The position numbers and the translations under genes were made by a program. Under the pieces are notes generated by a model. It was not told the DNA's origin. It saw only the letters and a list, made by a program, of their open reading frames with translations, and did not search any database. This document shows, one piece after another, positions 2,872 to 44,731 of a stretch of 64,000 nucleotides of DNA. The DNA lies in the IMG/VR virus record IMGVR_UViG_3300017991_005548, positions 62,001 to 126,000 of that record, one strand, 5' to 3'. Each line of letters opens with the position of its first letter. Positions within the stretch are counted from its first letter, which is position 1.

Positions 2872-2935
2872 AAAAAACCCCGACCAGAAGTCGGGGCCAA
2901 AATACACGAAAAAAACCCCGACGAATGTCGAGGTT
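2872..2935 (-). terminator. two tandem intrinsic terminators of the Phe attenuator
   Basis: AACCTCGAC-ATTC-GTCGGGGTT+U run (2909-2935) and CCCCGAC-TTCTG-GTCGGGG+U6 (2872-2896). Confidence 0.85.
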
Positions 2936-2973
2936 AAAAAGATCTAAACAACACTTTGATCTAACTACCTCGA

Positions 2974-3018
2974 CTAGAGGTGGCTAAAAAATCGAAAGAT
3001 GTTGTTTAAGTTGTTCAT
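2974..3018 (-). CDS. Phe attenuator leader peptide MNNLNNIFRFFSHL
   Basis: 14 codons, three TTT codons, RBS AAGGA, between promoter and terminators upstream of two tRNA-Phe genes. Confidence 0.8.
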   Translation of the reverse strand: MNNLNNIFRFFSHL

Positions 3019-3043
3019 AATGTAAAATCCTTTTGTTGCCCCT

Positions 3044-3071
3044 ATTATAGGGTATCATCCATGCTTTTCAA
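3044..3071 (-). promoter_or_regulatory. sigma70-like promoter of the tRNA-Phe operon
   Basis: TTGAAA-N16-TATAAT. Confidence 0.8.
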
Positions 3072-3086
3072 GTCAGAACTGCAAAA

Positions 3087-4133: not shown

Positions 4134-5149
4134 AATCTTTCTCCTTTTACTCTTTCCTTTTCGTACCCTAACCAAACTTTCCAACTTTTCCAGCCTCTAT
4201 CTTTATAAGTCCTATCTGGCACACTTGGTAAACAAACAGGTCTAGTATTTTCTTTCCAATATAAACACCATTCTGTTTTGCTTCTTATTCCCAATTTATG
4301 AACGAATTTTTCTGCTTCTTTATAAGGCATAAACCCACTTTTTGCAACTTTTATACTCCCCAAATCATAAAATTTGTTCTTTTTCCTTATTAAAAATAAA
4401 TTCGAAGGAGTGTTATACATATATTCTCTTAAAAGTATCGAACTGTTCTTAGCCACCCTAACTCTATAATACTTCTCTTTTAAACTTCTAACATTCCCCC
4501 TAAAACCATTTATATTTTCTTTTAATTTTAATAACAAACCATATGAGAACTTCTCACTTCCACTAGTAAGAGATGATTCTATGGAGTTCCTAGATATAGA
4601 TACATTACCGTCTCCGTCCCATAGCCCTCGTATAAAATCTGGCAGAAATTCTTCTGGAACATTAGGCATTTCACATGTCAGGCTTTTTCTCTCAGTTCCA
4701 CCTATTTTTTTAATTGATTCAACTAAATTTCTACAATAAATGTTCAAATGACAATATTTGCTTCTTGTCTCTTTAATGGGTCCATCAAAACCCATCGTTT
4801 TTGCGATTAACTCTAATAGATATTTATCTTTATTACTTTGCGTAATTGAAAACAAACTTTCATAAATACACCCATCTGCCCACCAAAAACCCAAAATATA
4901 CGCCATATCATGAGTCCATATCTCAAAGAAATCCTCATTTATCGAATATTTATCTCTTTTATAGGACATCTTTTTATACCCCATCCAATCCATGTACGAA
5001 ACCCATTCCGACTTATATACTTGATGAGGACTGCGAGGAATGAATGGAGGTCTGTTGTTTTTACACCAATCTTCCCATTCTGACTGCTTTTTAAGACCTA
5101 ATTGACGTACATATTGTCTTGCTTCTTCAAATAACAGGAATTTACTCAT
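4130..5149 (-). mobile_element. free-standing LAGLIDADG homing endonuclease with terminal integrase-repeat-like domains
   Basis: YILGFWWADG and FIRGLWDGDG motifs; N- and C-terminal F/YxEA(R/E)xxVxxLG...EW repeats. Confidence 0.85.
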
Positions 5150-5651: not shown

Positions 5652-6755
5652 TTATCGGTGATCAGCCATCTCTTTCAGAATTCTTGAGAACCAAAGTTTT
5701 CTTGAAAATTCCCAAGCTTCATTTTGGGTTTCTTCGTTCTCATCTTTAACAGAAAAAGAACCCATTGGTATCCTTGCGGCTCCTGCACCCATTTTTCCGC
5801 CACCATGTTCTTTCCCAAAAATCTTTTTACAGATCTTATCAACATCAATGGCCAGTCCGCTACTTCTAACACTGACTTCCAGGTTATCTCCGACAATAGC
5901 AACAATAAAAGAAGTGTCAATACCCTCGACTCTAGCTCTTTCTTCAGCTATACTTGGAAGGGCATCTCTTTTTGCAGGGGTTATGTAACCAATTCCTCCA
6001 AGAAACACTCCATTCTCTGAAATAGCATGTCCGTCATGGTCCAATCTTTTTCTAAGATCAAAATGATATGGTGGAATTGGATAGTTGATGATTTTAGCAA
6101 GCATTTTTTGATCTGTAACAACAATCAAGCTCTTATACGCATCAAAATCGAGATCTGTAACGACATCTGTAACTAAATCGCACGTATCTGTCTTAATGCC
6201 AATTAACAATGCTGTTGCAACATTAGAATCTTCTTCTGACATTTTGTCGAACTCTATTTTAGCCTGCATCATGTATTCCCATACAATCGTGGAAGCAGAG
6301 CCGACACTTCTAATGTCTTTTAATTTTGCCTTCTTTGTATCACCTTTATGATGATCAATAACCAAAGTGTAGACTGCATTGGGTATTGCGCTCCTTTCTG
6401 GAATGGTATCTACACAAACATATATGTCGGCAAAATTCTCAACATCTTCAGGAGTTTGAAGTTCCCCCTCAACCTCATCAACATGCGTTAACTGAAGATT
6501 AAGAACATTAATCATAGTTTTGTTTTGGGGATGGGAAATCTCTCCACTATAAATCAAAGAAACTCTAGCTTCTGGAAGCCAACTTCTGATAAGTCTTTTG
6601 AGTCCATATGCAGATCCGATACAGTCTGGGTCTGGACAGGAATGCATTGTTATTGCAATATGAAGTTGATGATTTGCCTCAAAAACCTCAAAAAGTTCAT
6701 CTTTGAACTGATCTGCAATATGGTCAACATTCTTTACTTCTTCTTTTTCATCCAT
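5652..6755 (-). CDS. DHH/DHHA1 family phosphoesterase (NrnA-like)
   Basis: HxxPDPD, DHH, GIKTDT, SVRS, GGG motifs. Confidence 0.9.
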   Translation of the reverse strand: MDEKEEVKNVDHIADQFKDELFEVFEANHQLHIAITMHSCPDPDCIGSAYGLKRLIRSWLPEARVSLIYSGEISHPQNKTMINVLNLQLTHVDEVEGELQTPEDVENFADIYVCVDTIPERSAIPNAVYTLVIDHHKGDTKKAKLKDIRSVGSASTIVWEYMMQAKIEFDKMSEEDSNVATALLIGIKTDTCDLVTDVVTDLDFDAYKSLIVVTDQKMLAKIINYPIPPYHFDLRKRLDHDGHAISENGVFLGGIGYITPAKRDALPSIAEERARVEGIDTSFIVAIVGDNLEVSVRSSGLAIDVDKICKKIFGKEHGGGKMGAGAARIPMGSFSVKDENEETQNEAWEFSRKLWFSRILKEMADHR

Positions 6756-6827: not shown

Positions 6828-7025
6828 TCAGGAAACAACTAAATTTTCAGATTCTTCTGACTCGTTTTCAGCCAGTAAATTCTCTTTACACTCTTCGCAA
6901 ATTCCATGCGACAGCATAATTAGTCGATCCTCTACATAATGATCCACTTCATGCGTAGAAATGCTGATAGTTTTTCTGCACCAAGCGCATCCAACTACAA
7001 TCGTTTGTAAGTATATGTCTTTCAT
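6828..7025 (-). CDS. small Cys-rich hypothetical protein
   Basis: CAWC...SHGICEEC. Confidence 0.6.
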   Translation of the reverse strand: MKDIYLQTIVVGCAWCRKTISISTHEVDHYVEDRLIMLSHGICEECKENLLAENESEESENLVVS

Positions 7026-7071
7026 TTTTATTCCTACACATAGTGGGGTTAGTTTTCTTCCATTAGGGTAT

Positions 7072-7099
7072 ATTATACTACATATTCTGAGGAAGTCAA
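7072..7099 (-). promoter_or_regulatory. sigma70-like promoter
   Basis: TTGACT-N16-TATAAT. Confidence 0.7.
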
Positions 7100-7130
7100 G
7101 TTAAGAAACTTATTTTTTTATAAGTTCGGC

Positions 7131-7657: not shown

Positions 7658-7785
7658 ATGAGTCGGAAGGAATCGAACCTTCATTCCCTGGTTGATTTAT
7701 TAAACATCAAATAGTTGCTGGAACGAAACTTATACAGTTTCACTTGGTTTTATGTCCAGGAGTTCTACCATTAAACTACGACCCA
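7658..7785 (-). ncRNA. tRNA-like gene with CAGCAA element inside the anticodon arm
   Basis: Acceptor TGGGTCG/CGACTCA, D and T arms intact, stem CCTGG/CCAGG enclosing ~60 nt; no CCA. Confidence 0.7.
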
Positions 7786-8512: not shown

Positions 8513-8578
8513 AAAAAAGCCCTCCTAACGCAAGCTAAGAGGGCACAAAAAAAGCCCTCCCGCTCATGGCAGAAGGGC
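8513..8578 (-). terminator. two tandem intrinsic terminators of the Glu/Pro attenuator
   Basis: GCCCT...AGGGC+U7 (8547-8578) and GCCCTC...GAGGGC+U6 (8513-8544). Confidence 0.8.
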
Positions 8579-8600
8579 CAAAATCATAGTTATGATCTAA

Positions 8601-8678
8601 CTACAGATCGGCTGACCTCCTGCCAAAGGCTGGCGGTTCTTCTCGTTCTGGTTCTCGAATGTACATGTAGTTGTTCAT
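8601..8678 (-). CDS. Glu/Pro attenuator leader peptide MNNYMYIREPEREEPPAFGRRSADL
   Basis: 25 codons with GAA x4 and CCA/CCG x3; RBS AAAGGA. Confidence 0.8.
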   Translation of the reverse strand: MNNYMYIREPEREEPPAFGRRSADL

Positions 8679-8703
8679 AACAAATTTTCCTTTCGTTACC
8701 CCC

Positions 8704-8731
8704 ATTATAAACCATCCTAGAGACTTTTCAA
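8704..8731 (-). promoter_or_regulatory. promoter of the Glu/Pro tRNA operon
   Basis: TTGAAA-N16-TATAAT. Confidence 0.8.
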
Positions 8732-8815
8732 GTCGAATTTGAAAATTTTTAGCAAAGTAATAAAAATAAAACGATTATGGCGACTTCCATATATACTGGA
8801 TTACACCAGAAACAA

Positions 8816-10984: not shown

Positions 10985-11348
10985 TTAGCTCATCCAGAGG
11001 AACATTATTTTTTCTAGCTTTTTCTCTGATGTTATGAGCAAACATATTAGCGGACTCAACGAAGTTTTTTAATTCTTCGATATTATTGGATTCCAAAGTG
11101 CCAATCCATGTTGCTATTGGCTGATTGCAGGAACATTTGATTACACAACTTCCATGAACATGATCTACTTCCAATTCAAGGAACTCAAACTCAGTGCAAT
11201 CTTCTAAATGTTGTTTAATATCTTCTTCGAAACTCATGAGAATTGAACTTTTTTCTTTGAAATAATAGACTTTGTGCAAAAATGTATTTATATCGATAAT
11301 CCCTTCTGCACGTAATTTAATAAGACGATCTAATTCTTTAGAGTCCAT
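10923..11348 (-). CDS. hypothetical protein
   Basis: ORF track. Confidence 0.5.
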   Translation of the reverse strand: MDSKELDRLIKLRAEGIIDINTFLHKVYYFKEKSSILMSFEEDIKQHLEDCTEFEFLELEVDHVHGSCVIKCSCNQPIATWIGTLESNNIEELKNFVESANMFAHNIREKARKNNVPLDELIEPLLGFCFEDLNFEAYTDG

Positions 11349-11370
11349 TATAGCTGTTTTGAAAATGTTT

Positions 11371-11712
11371 TCAAGTTTCGTTGCTTCTTACCCATTCAGG
11401 CACTTCGCCTTCTTCCCAACGGATAGCTCTGTCCAAATCTTCTTGAGTGGGCATCAGAATATTGTTTGATATCATATAATTCTGCCAATCTTCCCCAAAC
11501 TGTTCTCGGCATAAAGCTTGACCCCAATCAAACAACTCTCCTGAAATTGAGTAAACGGTATTCCCATGTTTCTCATTCATTCTCTTGACCCATTCAAAAA
11601 CACCTAATACTACTTGTTTTTGCTGTTCTTCGAGACTCATTTGATCTACTGCTTCTTCTACTACCTCATTTGATTCTTGAGTAATGTCCATTTTTTCCTC
11701 AATGGTTTTCAA
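11371..11712 (-). CDS. hypothetical protein
   Basis: ORF track. Confidence 0.6.
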   Translation of the reverse strand: MKTIEEKMDITQESNEVVEEAVDQMSLEEQQKQVVLGVFEWVKRMNEKHGNTVYSISGELFDWGQALCREQFGEDWQNYMISNNILMPTQEDLDRAIRWEEGEVPEWVRSNET

Positions 11713-27358: not shown

Positions 27359-27450
27359 TGGGCGCAAGGACGGAATTCGAATCCGTAGGGGAGATTACCT
27401 CCAACAGGGTCACAACCTGTCACGCTAAGCCAATTACGTTCTACCTTGCG
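27359..27450 (-). tRNA. tRNA-His(GTG) with long variable arm
   Basis: ACAGG-TTGTGAC-CCTGT; V arm GGAG-GTAAT-CTCC; C73, CCA. Confidence 0.8.
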
Positions 27451-27451
27451 A

Positions 27452-27527
27452 TGGGCTACTCGACGGATCTTGAAACCGCAACCTCCAGGGCCACAACCTA
27501 GCGCTCTGCCTTTGAGCTACGAGTAGC
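27452..27527 (-). tRNA. tRNA-His(GTG)
   Basis: G-1:C73, loop TTGTGGC, CCA. Confidence 0.9.
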
Positions 27528-27538
27528 ATCAAATTGGT

Positions 27539-28210
27539 CTATCCCAACCATTTGTCTCTTTTAAATCCACCTATTTCTTGAATGCCTCCCATAATTTTTT
27601 GTTTTATTTCAACGCTGTGTAATCTTACTGTGCAAATTCCGTATTTTAGTTTACCCTGAAATTCGCTAGATTTAAAATAACATTTTCTCAAATTTTCTTT
27701 CGTCAAACTAAGTGCATTAAGCCAAAATTCAACAATCTCTTGTTCAGAAACTCCATTGTTTGTATAGGCATTTATAGAAAGAGCAAATCTTTTTTCTTCA
27801 AACTCAAAGTGTTCTCTAAGGAACTTCATAAAAAGAATCATCATGTCAATATCGCTATTGCAGAATGTCACTCCTTTATTGGATTCTTTTGTTCCTTCTG
27901 CCCAATAAAGAATACAGCCAACCCGAAAACTTTCAGATATTTTAGCAAGTGCTCTTCCATCAGTTTGCCACTTCCTTCTTTTTCTTCTGAATTTTTCCGA
28001 ATATTTCTCCTGTTTACCAAAATAACCACCTTTTCTTGTTTTTGTCCTGTGCCGCAATTTTAGGTTTTCTATTTGTTCTTTCGTTAGTTGAATATCTCGA
28101 ACCCATAAACTAACAGACGATTGAGACACATCTAGAATCTTGGCTATTTTCTTTATAGATTGTCCACTTTTTCTTAGTTCTCTTGCTTTGTTTCTTTCGA
28201 CTTTTTTCAT
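27539..28210 (-). mobile_element. HTH + LAGLIDADG-like putative homing endonuclease inside tRNA operon
   Basis: N-terminal HTH (GQSIKKIAKILDVSQSSVSLW), LYWAEG, FCNSD; likely start MKK at 28210. Confidence 0.6.
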
Positions 28211-28268
28211 TTTCGAACCCCCATAGTTATATGTGATATAACATATTATACAGCAAGTTCGAACTTTT

Positions 28269-28343
28269 TGGTAGCAGTATCGGGACTTGAACCCGAACGG
28301 CACTCCTTATGAAAGAGTCGCACTACCATTATGCTATACTGCT
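28269..28343 (-). tRNA. tRNA-Met or Ile2 (CAT)
   Basis: ACTCT-TTCATAA-GGAGT, CCA. Confidence 0.85.
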
Positions 28344-28397
28344 ATGAAAGTCTTGGGCTAACCATTGCCCAACCTAGCGTCATTTATCGTATCCAAT

Positions 28398-28472
28398 TGG
28401 CGGTGATAAGGGGAATCGAACCCCTGTCCTCTGGGCGACAACCAGAAATCCTAGCCATTAAACGATATCACC
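28398..28472 (-). tRNA. tRNA-Asp(GTC)
   Basis: Loop TTGTCGC, G73, CCA. Confidence 0.95.
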
Positions 28473-28478
28473 GATAAG

Positions 28479-28552
28479 CGGAACCGAAGGGACTCGAACC
28501 CTCAATCTCCTGATCGACAGTCAGGGGCACTAACCAATTGCGCTACGGCTCC
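28479..28552 (-). tRNA. tRNA-Asp(GTC), no encoded CCA
   Basis: Loop CTGTCGA, G73. Confidence 0.9.
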
Positions 28553-28670
28553 ATAAAACTGAAAGCTCTAAAGTTTTCGTTAGTCTTTTTGCTTTCGCTC
28601 ATACTCCTATACTCTTTATTGTCCAATCCAGTTGTCAATTGGCTCTAAGGAACGATACGAACTTTCAGTT

Positions 28671-28747
28671 TGGTGACGACAGTTGGACTTGAACCAACGC
28701 TCTCCAGTGTGTCGAACTGGCGATTTATCCATCTAATCTATGCCGTC
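28671..28747 (-). tRNA. tRNA-Val(GAC)
   Basis: CCAGT-TCGACAC-ACTGG (C33), CCA. Confidence 0.85.
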
Positions 28748-28751
28748 AATT

Positions 28752-28829
28752 TGGTTCTGCGAGAGGGACTTGAACCCCCGACCTCCTCCTTATCAGGGAG
28801 GCGCTACTTACCATCTGAGCTACCGCAGA
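28752..28829 (-). tRNA. tRNA-Ile(GAT)
   Basis: Loop CTGATAA, CCA. Confidence 0.9.
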
Positions 28830-28834
28830 ATCAT

Positions 28835-28925
28835 TGGTGGGAGTAGCAGGACTTGAACCTGCGTTTACCTTTCGGCCTCCTGTGTATCAGACAGGCGCTC
28901 TAACCAAATACTGAGCTATACTCCC
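28835..28925 (-). tRNA. tRNA-Ile(GAT) with long variable arm
   Basis: Loop CTGATAC; V arm GCC-GAAA-GGT; CCA. Confidence 0.85.
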
Positions 28926-28985
28926 ATAACATTCTTTTTGCATTGTAACATCATCAATGTTATCGTGCAAATTTGATGTTACAAT

Positions 28986-29060
28986 TGGCAGGGACGAAAG
29001 GATTTGAACCCTTACCGCATGGTTTTGGAGACCAGCAGGCTACCATTACAACACGCCCCT
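28986..29060 (-). tRNA. tRNA-Trp(CCA)
   Basis: Loop CTCCAAA, CCA. Confidence 0.95.
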
Positions 29061-29065
29061 GTTAG

Positions 29066-29141
29066 TGGTACTCCTACCAGAACTCGAACCTGGATCTTCG
29101 ACTTCGAAGGCCGTTATTCTAATCCATTGAACTATAGGAGC
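29066..29141 (-). tRNA. tRNA-Arg(TCG)
   Basis: Loop CTTCGAA, CCA. Confidence 0.9.
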
Positions 29142-29175
29142 ATCTACATATAAATTTTCAAAGAACTCTAATTCT

Positions 29176-29252
29176 TGGTACACCCAGCAGGATTTGAACC
29201 TGCAACCTCCTGGTTCGTAGCCAGACGCTCTATCCAATTGAGCTATGAGTGC
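29176..29252 (-). tRNA. tRNA-Arg(ACG)
   Basis: Loop CTACGAA, CCA. Confidence 0.95.
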
Positions 29253-29257
29253 AACTT

Positions 29258-29334
29258 TGGTACTCCTGGCGGGACTCGAACCCACATAGACCTGTTTAGA
29301 AGACAGGTGCCTGATCCAGTTAGACTACAGGAGC
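29258..29334 (-). tRNA. tRNA-Arg(TCT)
   Basis: Loop CTTCTAA, CCA. Confidence 0.95.
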
Positions 29335-29342
29335 ATCTAAAA

Positions 29343-29498
29343 TTATTTCAACTTTTCTTTCGCTTTTTTCAAATCCTCAATTAACTGTTTCTTTGAGTAG
29401 TTTCTGCCTACCCAAACTAATTCATACATTTTCTCGTCTTTTTGATTCTGAACACTGTTCAGAACTCGTTCTAAAATCTCTTGTGCTGTTTCTTTCAT
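29343..29498 (-). CDS. 51-aa hypothetical protein within tRNA operon
   Basis: MKETAQEILERVLNSVQ...LKKAKEKLK, manual translation. Confidence 0.4.
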   Translation of the reverse strand: MKETAQEILERVLNSVQNQKDEKMYELVWVGRNYSKKQLIEDLKKAKEKLK

Positions 29499-29501
29499 TT
29501 T

Positions 29502-29576
29502 TGGCCTCTCCTATAGGACTCGAACCTATATCTGCGGTTTAGGAAACCGATATTCTATCCCTTGAACTAAGGAGAG
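29502..29576 (-). tRNA. tRNA-Arg(CCT)
   Basis: Loop TTCCTAA, CCA. Confidence 0.9.
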
Positions 29577-29584
29577 TCAGGCAC

Positions 29585-29617
29585 AAAAAAAGCCCAAGCT
29601 CCTTAGAGCCTGGGCTT
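29585..29617 (-). terminator. attenuator terminator of the Arg-led tRNA operon
   Basis: AAGCCCAGGCTC-TAAG-GAGCTTGGGCTT + U run. Confidence 0.85.
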
Positions 29618-29635
29618 CGTAAATCTGCTTATCTA

Positions 29636-29716
29636 TCAGAACATGCGATAGCGCAGATCAGAAGCCCTGTGGCTCCAATCGCGTCTAATAATATGCATGT
29701 CTCTAACAACGTTCAT
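29636..29716 (-). CDS. multi-amino-acid attenuator leader peptide MNVVRDMHIIRRDWSHRASDLRYRMF
   Basis: 26 codons; RBS AAGGA; residues 3-14 are only V,R,D,M,H,I,W. Confidence 0.8.
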   Translation of the reverse strand: MNVVRDMHIIRRDWSHRASDLRYRMF

Positions 29717-29813
29717 TTTTCTTAAATCCTTATTCGATTTAGTTTTTCAACTTACCCTCATTAGTCACATTTGATTTGAGTTTTTCTCAGATCTGTACCA
29801 AGAAGTTATTATC

Positions 29814-29841
29814 ATTATAAGCCTTATTCAGAGTATTTCAA
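29814..29841 (-). promoter_or_regulatory. promoter of the Arg-led tRNA operon
   Basis: TTGAAA-N16-TATAAT. Confidence 0.8.
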
Positions 29842-29867
29842 GTCGTCTTTGAAGATTTTCTTGAATT

Positions 29868-34111: not shown

Positions 34112-34459
34112 CAGGTTAGCAATTTTGGTTTTCATTTCAAGTGAAAGTTTTGGTTGCTGTAACTAACCTTCTATCCTAAATTAAAAATTTGAACAGACTG
34201 ACTTGTTTTTTTTAGCATAAAAAATTTTGAGTTGCTGAATGCAGTCTTATATCAAATTGTTTTTCTAAATTTTCCTTTTTCTTGTTTTCAAAGAAACAAG
34301 TGAAACAGCTTGGGTTTTCCATCCTTTATTTCAGACCTCGATGAATTTGGGTCCTCAAATTTATTTTTAAAACCCTCTCGACTGGGTTCTCGTTTTATTT
34401 CTGTCAGGGCGACTCTGACGCTCGTTTTATCGTGTTTTTTGGTTGCAGTAACCAAGCTT
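34112..34459 (-). ncRNA. structured leader with three CAGCAA elements and anticodon-loop mimics
   Basis: AAG-N8-C(A/T)GCAA at 34154-70, 34232-48, 34443-59, each closed by a helix+CTG; TTTCA-CTTGAAA-TGAAA and T6-ATGCTAA-A6 hairpins. Confidence 0.7.
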
Positions 34460-34477
34460 TATTCAGTTGTTGGTTCC

Positions 34478-34505
34478 ATTATAAGGATTACGAAAAACTT
34501 TTCAA
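34478..34505 (-). promoter_or_regulatory. promoter of TROVE leader
   Basis: TTGAAA-N16-TATAAT. Confidence 0.8.
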
Positions 34506-34534
34506 GTCGGTTTTGAATATTTTTTTTGAATTTT

Positions 34535-41428: not shown

Positions 41429-41562
41429 TGGACAAGACGGGATTCGAACCCGCAAATCGAGATGCCTCACCCATTGCTTAGGAGAAAAATAACTCCTGCC
41501 CATGGTAGCGACATTACTCTTAAGACCAGAGCCTCAACTTTGCCAATTTAAGTTACTTGCCC
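41429..41562 (-). ncRNA. tRNA-like RNA with branched ~75-nt insert replacing the anticodon loop
   Basis: GGGCAAG/CTTGTCC acceptor, D arm, T arm GCGGG-TTCGAAT-CCCGT; two inserted hairpins; no CCA. Confidence 0.65.
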
Positions 41563-41576
41563 GTCTTGTCAAATTT

Positions 41577-41698
41577 TGGCGGATGAGGTAGGATTCGAAC
41601 CTACACTGTAGCGGTTTCTGTTTTTTGGTTGCTGAAGAGAACCTTTTTGTCAAGTTCATTTTTTGGACCGCCGTCTCTGCCAGTTGGACTACTCATCC
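41577..41698 (-). ncRNA. tRNA-like gene with CAGCAA element in the anticodon loop
   Basis: GGATGAG/CTCATCC-GCCA; stem GCGGT/ACCGC encloses 51 nt. Confidence 0.75.
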
Positions 41699-41951: not shown

Positions 41952-42689
41952 TTATACCCCAAAAATCAATAATTCAAAATCGCCATTCTCATGTTCTACG
42001 ATTGCAGAGCAATGCTCTACCCAATCTCCGCAGTTATAGTAGTCAATCCCATCAATTTTTTTGATTATAGGAGAATGAACATGACCACATATAACTCCAT
42101 CGCAATGATTCTCTTTGGCATACTCTGAAAGGAGACCTTCAAACTCTCCAACATAAGTAACAGCTTTTTTAAAATTTTCCCTGGCAAACTTTGATAAACG
42201 AACTCTTTTCACTCCGAACATCCTTAAACATCTTGCCAGGAACTCATTCATTGAAACAAGAGTGTCATAACCCCAACTTCCAACCTTTGAGATCATGACT
42301 CCAATTCTTGAAAAAAGAATGAAATCAAACTTATCTCCATGAGTGATGTAATACTTCTTTCCAAAACTGTGATAATATGTTTCTTTACAAATTTCCAGGT
42401 TCGGATAATGAAAACTGTCCAAAAGTTCCATCATACCATGATCATGATTTCCTAAAACATAATGGACGTTACAGTGTTTTGACATTTTTAGAAGTCTTCT
42501 AATGACTTCTGTTTGGTTTTTATCCCATTTAGTTCTGTCTAATCTCCAAAGATCAAAGATATCTCCGATAAGATATAAATTGTCACATTCAGTCTCTTTT
42601 AGGAATTTAAGTAGTTCTTTAGATTTGCATCCAACACTGGCCATGTGGCAGTCTGAGATGAATACTGCTCGGTACTTAGTTTTACTCAT
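41952..42689 (-). CDS. LpxH-like calcineurin-type metallophosphoesterase
   Basis: FISDCH, GDIFD, GNHD, THGD, GHVH, NCGDW; likely start MSKTK at 42689. Confidence 0.85.
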   Translation of the reverse strand: MSKTKYRAVFISDCHMASVGCKSKELLKFLKETECDNLYLIGDIFDLWRLDRTKWDKNQTEVIRRLLKMSKHCNVHYVLGNHDHGMMELLDSFHYPNLEICKETYYHSFGKKYYITHGDKFDFILFSRIGVMISKVGSWGYDTLVSMNEFLARCLRMFGVKRVRLSKFARENFKKAVTYVGEFEGLLSEYAKENHCDGVICGHVHSPIIKKIDGIDYYNCGDWVEHCSAIVEHENGDFELLIFGV

Positions 42690-42777
42690 ATTTTTCCTCC
42701 TATAAGTAGTAAGGAATAATACTGAGAAAACAGGATAAAACCTACTCAATAATGAGTTGTTAACCAAGTATTAATAT

Positions 42778-44105: not shown

Positions 44106-44141
44106 ATGGCAATAAAATTTCAAAGATCTCTTGATGTTTTA

Positions 44142-44213
44142 AATATTCCCGTTCGGTAACATTCGAAACACTCTGAAGTTCAAAACCTTAGAATATTACC
44201 GCTCGGTAACATT
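44142..44213. repeat. pair of 22-bp palindromes 50 bp apart
   Basis: AATATT(C/A)CCG(TT/CT)CGGTAACATT at ~44142-44163 and ~44192-44213. Confidence 0.65.
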
Positions 44214-44233
44214 TTGGCTATCAATTAAGCCAT

Positions 44234-44266
44234 AAAAAAACCCCGTTCGGAAAACCGAACGGGGTT
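44234..44266 (-). terminator. attenuator terminator of the Cys/Tyr/Leu/Ser tRNA operon
   Basis: AACCCCGTTCGG-TTTT-CCGAACGGGGTT + U run. Confidence 0.9.
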
Positions 44267-44284
44267 GAAAACCGAGTTAAGAAC

Positions 44285-44362
44285 TTACGTTCTCTGGACG
44301 CACAACCCCGTCCATCTCAAACTGAGATATGATGAACATAGGCTGAGCGATAAAGATTTCAT
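44285..44362 (-). CDS. Ser/Leu/Cys/Tyr attenuator leader peptide MKSLSLSLCSSYLSLRWTGLCVQRT
   Basis: 25 codons; residues 3-15 are only S,L,C,Y; RBS AGGA. Confidence 0.8.
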   Translation of the reverse strand: MKSLSLSLCSSYLSLRWTGLCVQRT

Positions 44363-44401
44363 TATAAGTTCTTTCCTGTTAAAAATTCAAATTACAACCC
44401 T

Positions 44402-44429
44402 ATTATAAACTGGATCTGAAGCTTTTCAA
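44402..44429 (-). promoter_or_regulatory. promoter of the Cys/Tyr/Leu/Ser tRNA operon
   Basis: TTGAAA-N16-TATAAT. Confidence 0.8.
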
Positions 44430-44731
44430 GTTGAAAACGCAATTATTTCAAATTTTTCTTTTTCTTTCAGCCATTCGTACTCATGAAGGTAAGGGTTATC
44501 GTAGAAAATAATTGGATACTTTCCACCACCAGTACATATTGGGACAACATTATAGGATAGCCATTCAGTCGCCTCTTCAAAATCCATCCCTTCTCCCATG
44601 AACTTCTGCAACATAAGTTCATAAGAATAAATAAGTTCATCTCTTATGGTGATGCCAACAACACAATTGTCCAAATCATCTAGTTTAATGGTCCCATCAT
44701 CACATTCTTCCAATATTTTTTGAATATCCAT
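44426..44731 (-). CDS. hypothetical phage protein
   Basis: ORF track. Confidence 0.55.
   Translation of the reverse strand: MDIQKILEECDDGTIKLDDLDNCVVGITIRDELIYSYELMLQKFMGEGMDFEEATEWLSYNVVPICTGGGKYPIIFYDNPYLHEYEWLKEKEKFEIIAFST

Follow-up and report, generated by a model that had tools for sequence, protein, structure and literature searches.

In classical transcription attenuation, slow decoding of a leader leads to read-through into the genes beyond it (PMC1183508). The leader units described here resemble the trpL, hisL, pheL, leuL, thrL and ilvL/ivbL leaders in having a short translated ORF, a run of regulatory codons, and mutually exclusive antiterminator and terminator hairpins, with an intrinsic terminator placed before the regulated genes and slow decoding predicted to give read-through. 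They differ from the classical leaders in their targets, which are tRNA genes instead of enzymes, in their phage setting, and in the number of amino acids per leader, which reaches seven. The phage leader has neither sequence nor covariance-model similarity to the Rfam leader families (Trp, His, Phe, Leu and Thr). A scan of the whole window (the 64-kb stretch of DNA analysed here) at Rfam gathering thresholds detected only tRNAs, with no amino-acid leader family and no T-box, and a relaxed scan of positions 29560-29860 gave only weak matches to sRNA and snoRNA models, far below thresholds, and again no T-box.

Multivalent attenuation is known from the thr leader, which contains Thr and Ile codons, and from the ilvGMEDA leader, with Leu, Val and Ile codons. 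As proposed for the phage leaders, the codons of several amino acids are mixed in these regulatory runs and a shortage of any of them relieves termination. To our knowledge, the known multivalent leaders respond to two or three metabolically linked amino acids, whereas the phage leaders contain codons for four to seven unrelated ones, grouped only by a shared tRNA operon. Leader-peptide attenuation also acts on aminoacyl-tRNA synthetase genes, as in the E. coli pheST leader. His-codon leaders have been described upstream of hisS paralogs in bacilli, in a survey that reports no tRNA-gene target and in which the terms 'tRNA gene' and 'tRNA operon' have 0 occurrences (PMC2965389). The aminoacyl-tRNA synthetase leaders are similar to the phage leaders in that a component of translation is controlled by the translation speed of its own cognate codons, and different in that the target is a charging enzyme and a single amino acid is involved. 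The T-box riboswitch binds uncharged tRNA directly and needs neither an ORF nor a ribosome. Here too a choice between terminator and antiterminator reports tRNA charging and controls genes for aminoacylation supply; the difference lies in the direct binding of uncharged tRNA, whereas the phage leader has an ORF and no T-box match.

Compared with these systems, the machinery of the leader unit at 29585-29842 is familiar; what appears to be new is the tRNA-gene target, the huge-phage setting, the range of up to seven amino acids and the bespoke leader of each operon. From the comparative and modelled evidence presented below, it is likely that the unit is a ribosome-mediated (leader-peptide) transcription attenuator that gates the tRNA operon of a huge phage. 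The leader was absent from GenBank phages, in which a distant search matched a tRNA-Arg gene only, and from a collection that covers 185,579 species of bacteria and archaea with one genome per species. The only match there, from a Paenibacillus MAG (L031), was rejected as a chance match located inside a coding gene and without tRNAs. No report of leader-peptide control of tRNA genes was found by a full-text literature search, which covered few subscription-journal papers.

The window is AT-rich and phage-like (GC ~38%), with PHROG matches to a replicative helicase, a DNA helicase, a methyltransferase and an ATP-dependent protease. No close relative was found among GenBank phages by megablast. 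Two IMG/VR contigs of 296 kb and 476 kb are 99% identical to the window at the tested gene, and a 525-kb contig carries the same protein as that gene, indicating that the window belongs to a huge phage. Thirty-four tRNA genes were found in the window, all of them on the minus strand. Unusually long Ile, Glu and His tRNA genes of 88-92 nt are present, and Rfam tRNA matches of 119-134 nt, absent from the ARAGORN output, map to 7658-7785, 41429-41562 and 41580-41698 (minus strand); both kinds of unusual length are possibly due to inserts or introns in phage tRNA genes. A gene for an LpxH-like metallophosphoesterase (41952-42767, minus strand) is located between two tRNA arrays, and its best named cellular matches, at 40-43% identity, are mostly from Arcobacter-group Campylobacterota, which gives a weak hint of the host.

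All parts of the leader unit are on the minus strand. A sigma-70-type promoter (CTTGAAA-16 nt-TATAAT, 29814..29842), in which TTGAAA-16-TATAAT at 29841..29814 scores 11/12, is followed by a 5' leader of roughly 90 nt that extends to an AAGGA Shine-Dalgarno sequence (29727..29731), read from the sequence and located 10 nt 5' of the ATG. The leader ORF, MNVVRDMHIIRRDWSHRASDLRYRMF, consists of 26 codons plus the stop (29636..29716, with the ATG at 29716 and the stop ending at 29636), and both the ORF and the codons quoted in the preliminary description were found there. Its codons 3-14, VVRDMHIIRRDW (29675..29710), form the regulatory run, in which each of the seven amino acids carried by the downstream tRNAs occurs and no other. 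Protector (anti-antiterminator) helices span 29633..29709 of the ORF region; in both the full-length minimum-energy fold and the RNAalifold consensus (n=13), the start of the ORF pairs with its end, with an additional inner 1:2 hairpin.

The predicted antiterminator has a 5' strand in codons 13-21, TTGGAGCC..GGGCTTC..GATCTGC (29653..29678), taken from the fold of a truncated transcript, and a 3' strand, GCAGATT..GAAGCCC..GGCTCTAA (29603..29628), which overlaps the 5' arm of the intrinsic terminator. The latter (29585..29618) has a 13-bp stem, a 4-nt loop and a T7 tract, as read from the sequence, and shows compensatory pair changes in homologs. The stop codon and the terminator stem are separated by 17 nt, and the terminator end and the first tRNA by 8 nt.

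Downstream of the terminator, ARAGORN detected an array of 12 tRNA genes (27452..29576, minus strand), namely four for Arg (cct, tct, acg and tcg), one for Trp, two for Ile, one for Val (gac), two for Asp, one for Met (cat) and one for His. The operon had been counted as one of 13 tRNAs in the preliminary description; 12 of these are firm, while the thirteenth, a possible second tRNA-His of 92 nt (27359..27450, minus strand), was recovered only at a relaxed ARAGORN threshold. Two His genes are present at the default threshold in the relatives L009, L015 and L019. Positions 1 and 72 of the CAT tRNA are paired, and its anticodon stem lacks the three G-C pairs of initiators, indicating that it is of the elongator type. 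Within the array, starting 4 nt after tRNA-Arg(cct), there is a 51-aa ORF (29343..29498, minus strand), presumably co-transcribed with the array tRNAs, which shares 80% identity with its positional counterpart in L013 (9669-9824); from this conserved ORF, the attenuated operon seems to encode a small protein as well. Another ORF, of ~230 aa, was found between tRNA-Met and tRNA-His (27539-28231, minus strand). It carries an N-terminal helix-turn-helix domain with weak matches to HTH_7, HTH_23 and HTH_38, and may be a mobile or homing element.

The central proposal of the preliminary description was that one leader peptide senses seven amino acids that match those of the tRNA operon, and a statistical test of this match was carried out. 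Codons 3-14 encode exactly Val, Arg, Asp, Met, His, Ile and Trp, none missing and none foreign with respect to the array, and the run lies directly 5' of that array. In the 30 long ORFs of the window, these seven amino acids account for 0.27 (codon level) to 0.30 (amino-acid level) of the codons, and the probability of a 12-codon cognate run in 25 codons is ~5e-7 by simulation and 2e-6 analytically, that is, about 1e-6. A six-frame scan of the whole 64 kb served as a control for the look-elsewhere problem: the longest run of those seven residues was the 12 of the leader, and the next was 9. The proposed match is thus borne out by the sequence statistics.

Under standard wobble rules, all the codons of the run (12/12) and the AGG at codon 17 are readable by array tRNAs, as had been claimed, and the run contains no codon specific to tRNA-Arg(tcg). 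Codon-level tuning to the array anticodons, or sampling of every isoacceptor, was not significant when the amino-acid sequence was held and the phage's own synonymous usage applied (P = 0.28), so the decodability of the codons adds nothing beyond the amino-acid match. The same test on the leader of the Cys/Tyr/Leu/Ser array described below was not significant either (P = 0.10). Codon-level design of the leaders was dropped on these two values, the signal being at the amino-acid level.

Three sister units were found in the window, all on the minus strand. At 2872..3072, a promoter, the leader MNNLNNIFRFFSHL and two tandem terminators precede two tRNA-Phe genes. The unit at 8513..8732 is composed of a promoter, the leader MNNYMYIREPEREEPPAFGRRSADL and two tandem terminators, followed by a Glu/Pro tRNA array, and that at 44234..44430 of a promoter, the leader MKSLSLSLCSSYLSLRWTGLCVQRT and a terminator, followed by a Cys/Tyr/Leu/Ser tRNA array. 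The last of these leaders has a cognate run of 13 (P ~3e-8), which is the longest such run in the window. In the spacer between its terminator and the first tRNA (44106-44233, minus strand), two imperfect copies of a ~21-nt motif, ATGTTACCGA.CGG.AATATT, were seen by eye only. Every one of the 34 tRNAs of the window lies 3' of one of the four leaders, and in a leader-by-cluster matrix the longest cognate run of each leader falls on its own cluster. The tRNA gene clusters in these genomes would correspond to regulatory units. A fifth leader type, NQQNNQ (...FNQQNNQ...; MLFSLFNQQNNQTK...), was found in the related phage L025 (6690-6870), where it is followed by a terminator and then by tRNA-Gln(ttg) and two tRNA-Asn(gtt) genes (6872-7130), and is served by a promoter motif of the same type; L004 contains a Glu/Pro-type leader.

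These recurrences bear on the explanation that the small ORF is the gene of a functional micro-protein, or else a chance ORF whose likeness to the tRNA set is a coincidence or a by-product of base composition. Small ORFs are common in phages, and a real 51-aa gene is present in the same array, but a chance ORF is excluded by the run statistics and by the recurrence in five leader types; the explanation as a whole is scarcely credible, and the frameshifted homologs described below argue against its micro-protein form.

The four leader units of the window share a promoter motif, CTTGAAA-N15-20-TATAAT, for which 6 sites were found in the window against 0.04 expected; 4 of the 6 precede leaders. 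The other two sites (11347-11375 and 34478-34506) were rejected as leader units, with neither a leader nor a terminator there. In the region at 34150-34506 (minus strand), the motif at 34506-34478 is followed by ~330 nt without an evident ORF, possibly a non-coding RNA or else a long 5' leader. A sigma-70-family protein is encoded in more distant phages that have an OGFr_N-like gene (L005, 2964-3881; L007, 2484-3623). The extended -35 motif of the leaders might be read by a phage sigma factor together with host core polymerase.

The gene just upstream of the leader unit encodes a 171-aa protein with an OGFr_N domain, which has graded homologs in metagenomes. In four contigs with a 66-77% identical upstream protein, the synteny with the leader and the tRNA array is kept. 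Next to four other upstream-gene homologs, P0015 (51%), P0020 (44%), P0010 (56%) and P0005 (75% identical), no adjacent tRNAs were detected in the sequence examined. Further leaders were obtained from metagenome contigs by a DNA pattern search built on the leader core; two of the pattern matches (L018 and L026) were discarded as chance matches inside coding genes, without tRNAs. The final set contained 13 distinct leaders, that of the window and 12 diverged relatives, which were aligned. In all 13, an ORF of 26-30 codons is preceded by a promoter-like motif and an AGGA-like site and followed by a terminator, with the AGGA at a similar distance from the start in most of them. In 12 of the 13, a tRNA-Arg gene starts 53-82 nt after the stop; the contig of L030 ends 144 nt past the stop.

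The homologous leaders were checked for loss of the cognate composition, which turned out to be kept in the 12 relatives, with one exception for Val (L003) and imperfect matches in L019, L020 and L027. The Val codons of the window (GTT GTT) are accompanied by a gac tRNA, the GTA of L013 by an aac tRNA, and the GTA of L015 by a tac tRNA (Infernal match at 2487-2558, anticodon read from the sequence), while L009, L020, L025 and L027 have neither a Val codon nor a Val tRNA. The GTA of L019 and its gac tRNA match at the amino-acid level only, since gac cannot read GTA under standard wobble, and the exception, L003, has GTA with no Val tRNA. Across these loci, Val codons and Val tRNAs are largely present together or absent together. 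A Trp tRNA was not detected in L027, nor a Met tRNA in the stretch of the L020 locus that was examined. L027 also contains two tRNA-like genes with odd anticodon loops (6447-6522 and 4417-4489); at the relaxed ARAGORN setting the first is given a four-base anticodon (aaac) and the second is left unassigned.

All 12 relatives carry a peptide core, MHI(I)RRWD(D)R (as WDDR in L029), and the corresponding sequence of the window is MHIIRRDW. This conservation in the 12 relatives, with few synonymous changes, is more than codon sensing alone requires, and favors a variant of the same architecture in which the signal is a nascent-peptide (arrest-peptide) or small-molecule effect acting through MHI(I)RRWDR, as in TnaC/SecM-type leaders. 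We regard this variant as quite improbable: the four other leader types have unrelated peptides, each built of the amino acids of its own cluster, part of the nucleotide conservation of the core is explained by pairing with the ORF end, and most of the variation at the positions 5' of the core stays among V, I, M and R, members of the cognate set. The invariance of the core nucleotides could be due in part to RNA pairing or to a nascent-peptide effect.

The two halves of the ORF are conserved in different ways. In the first half, conservation follows the reading frame. L003 and L025 carry a 1-nt deletion that puts the 3' half in another frame (peptide ...SFGLLDCANAYSDM vs ...SHRASGLRYRMF), but the antiterminator-strand nucleotides GGGCTTCT..CTGC..GCAT are kept, indicating that the 3' half of the ORF is under selection as RNA and not as peptide. 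The C-terminal half is therefore not conserved as protein, contrary to what a functional micro-protein would show.

RNAalifold analysis of the 13 sequences recovered a conserved protector helix and the terminator, with pair-keeping changes on both sides in 6/31 pairs, and compensatory changes among homologs were found in the terminator. For the antiterminator as drawn for the window, 76% of the cells are paired across the 13 homologs, vs 29-56% when the partner strand is slid, and one of its pairs is U-A in five sequences and C-G in four. Because this structure was derived from one of the 13 sequences, the support given by its pairing and covariation is modest.

In folding simulations, the full-length leader forms the long helix in the ORF and the terminator (z = -5.8 vs shuffles). 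When the transcript is cut before the 3' arm of the terminator, the minimum-energy fold is the antiterminator (-37.9 kcal/mol), in which 29678-29653 pairs with 29628-29603; this is the same pairing that the preliminary description had quoted. The cut transcript prefers the antiterminator even without a ribosome, and the untranslated default state of the leader is uncertain in these models. For the full-length RNA, the terminator form always wins at equilibrium, so that any regulation must be kinetic, as in classical attenuators.

A very stable terminator, dominant in every equilibrium fold, would also be a property of a constitutive attenuator or insulator, which sets a low fixed tRNA level or blocks upstream transcription, with no sensing role for the ORF. 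The promoter, however, sits between the upstream gene and the terminator, so the transcript on which the terminator acts is that of the unit itself. A constitutive device also leaves unexplained the composition match (P ~1e-6 for this leader and 3e-8 for that of the Cys/Tyr/Leu/Ser array), the conservation of an antiterminator overlapping the terminator arm, and the contrast between a run conserved in frame and a frameshifted 3' half, and we find it highly unlikely.

The effect of the ribosome position was modelled by placing the ribosome codon by codon and allowing only the RNA 3' of it to fold. This procedure replaced equilibrium folds with a masked ribosome, in which helices could close around the ribosome, which is unrealistic. 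In the window leader with 3'-only folding, the terminator 5' arm stayed ~0.9 sequestered as long as the A site was at codons 2-10 or 11. With the A site at codons 11-13 the value was ~0.5, and from codon 14 onward to the stop it was <=0.2; this drop at codons 11-14 makes the switch point coincide with the end of the cognate run. Under the same model, all 13 leaders had the arm 0.8-1.0 sequestered with the A site anywhere up to the RR pair, and sequestration dropped through W-D-R to ~0-0.4 beyond. The three sister leader types gave the same dependence on ribosome position in the masked-ribosome equilibrium folds. In silico, the antiterminator and the terminator are mutually exclusive, and the antiterminator persists when a ribosome is stalled in the run and is lost after the ribosome passes, in 13/13 homologs. 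The statistics, the three sister units, the 12 homologs and the 13/13 folds agree in silico with the view, advanced in the preliminary description, that these leaders are functional; they would act as leader-peptide attenuators.

From the sequence elements, their statistics and conservation, the partial covariation and the folds, we infer ribosome-polymerase coupling, stalling and a regulatory outcome as follows. A bacterial-type RNA polymerase would start at the promoter (29842-29814), and a ribosome would begin to translate the 26-codon leader. If charged tRNA were short for Val, Arg, Asp, Met, His, Ile or Trp, the ribosome would linger between codons 3 and ~12, leaving 29678-29653 free to pair with 29628-29603. 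This pairing would sequester the terminator 5' arm and allow read-through into the tRNA genes and the 51-aa ORF. If all seven amino acids were decoded fast, the ribosome would cover the antiterminator 5' strand and reach the stop, the terminator would form, and transcription would end at 29585. With no translation, the conserved protector helix in the ORF may also favor termination. The logic would be that of an OR gate with negative feedback, in which a decoding shortage in any served codon class turns on the whole tRNA set.

The quantity sensed by such a leader would be the supply of charged tRNA at the ribosome A site, and not necessarily the seven free amino acids. Since the product of the operon is tRNA, the loop would correct a tRNA shortage rather than an amino-acid shortage. 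Theory predicts a lower sensitivity where the regulatory codons of one amino acid make up little of the control region (PMC1183508), and as only 1-3 codons are present for each, the sensitivity of the leader to any single amino acid may be modest. In the Phe (2872-2960) and Glu/Pro (8513-8585) leaders on the minus strand, each with its two tandem terminators, a ribosome stalled in the cognate run is predicted to free the 3' arm of terminator 1 for pairing with the 5' arm of terminator 2, with 9 bp in the Phe unit. By this pairing, antitermination would be relayed to the second terminator.

The purpose and the control of phage tRNA genes are debated; among the proposals are that they compensate for codon usage, replace degraded host tRNAs or help to evade defences that cleave tRNAs. 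An attenuator through which slow decoding of an operon's own codons switches on its tRNA genes would amount to a built-in sensor of decoding capacity. On the broader proposal we are evenly divided: that these phages have a closed-loop, demand-driven tRNA supply, in which the bespoke leader of each tRNA operon lists its own amino acids and fires only when those codons slow, and in which the new tRNAs switch the operon off. If this were true, the slowing could be triggered by depletion of host tRNAs through host shut-off, by cutting by anticodon nucleases or by a misfit in codon usage; the operons would hold the first tRNA genes found to be regulated by the translation of their cognate codons, and would provide a direct read-out of why phages carry tRNAs. 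The leader alone could report which tRNA shortages the phage expects, which would make the question of phage tRNAs experimentally tractable. Leader-peptide attenuation would thereby reach beyond metabolic enzymes to tRNA genes, and its range would grow from between one and three amino acids to as many as seven.
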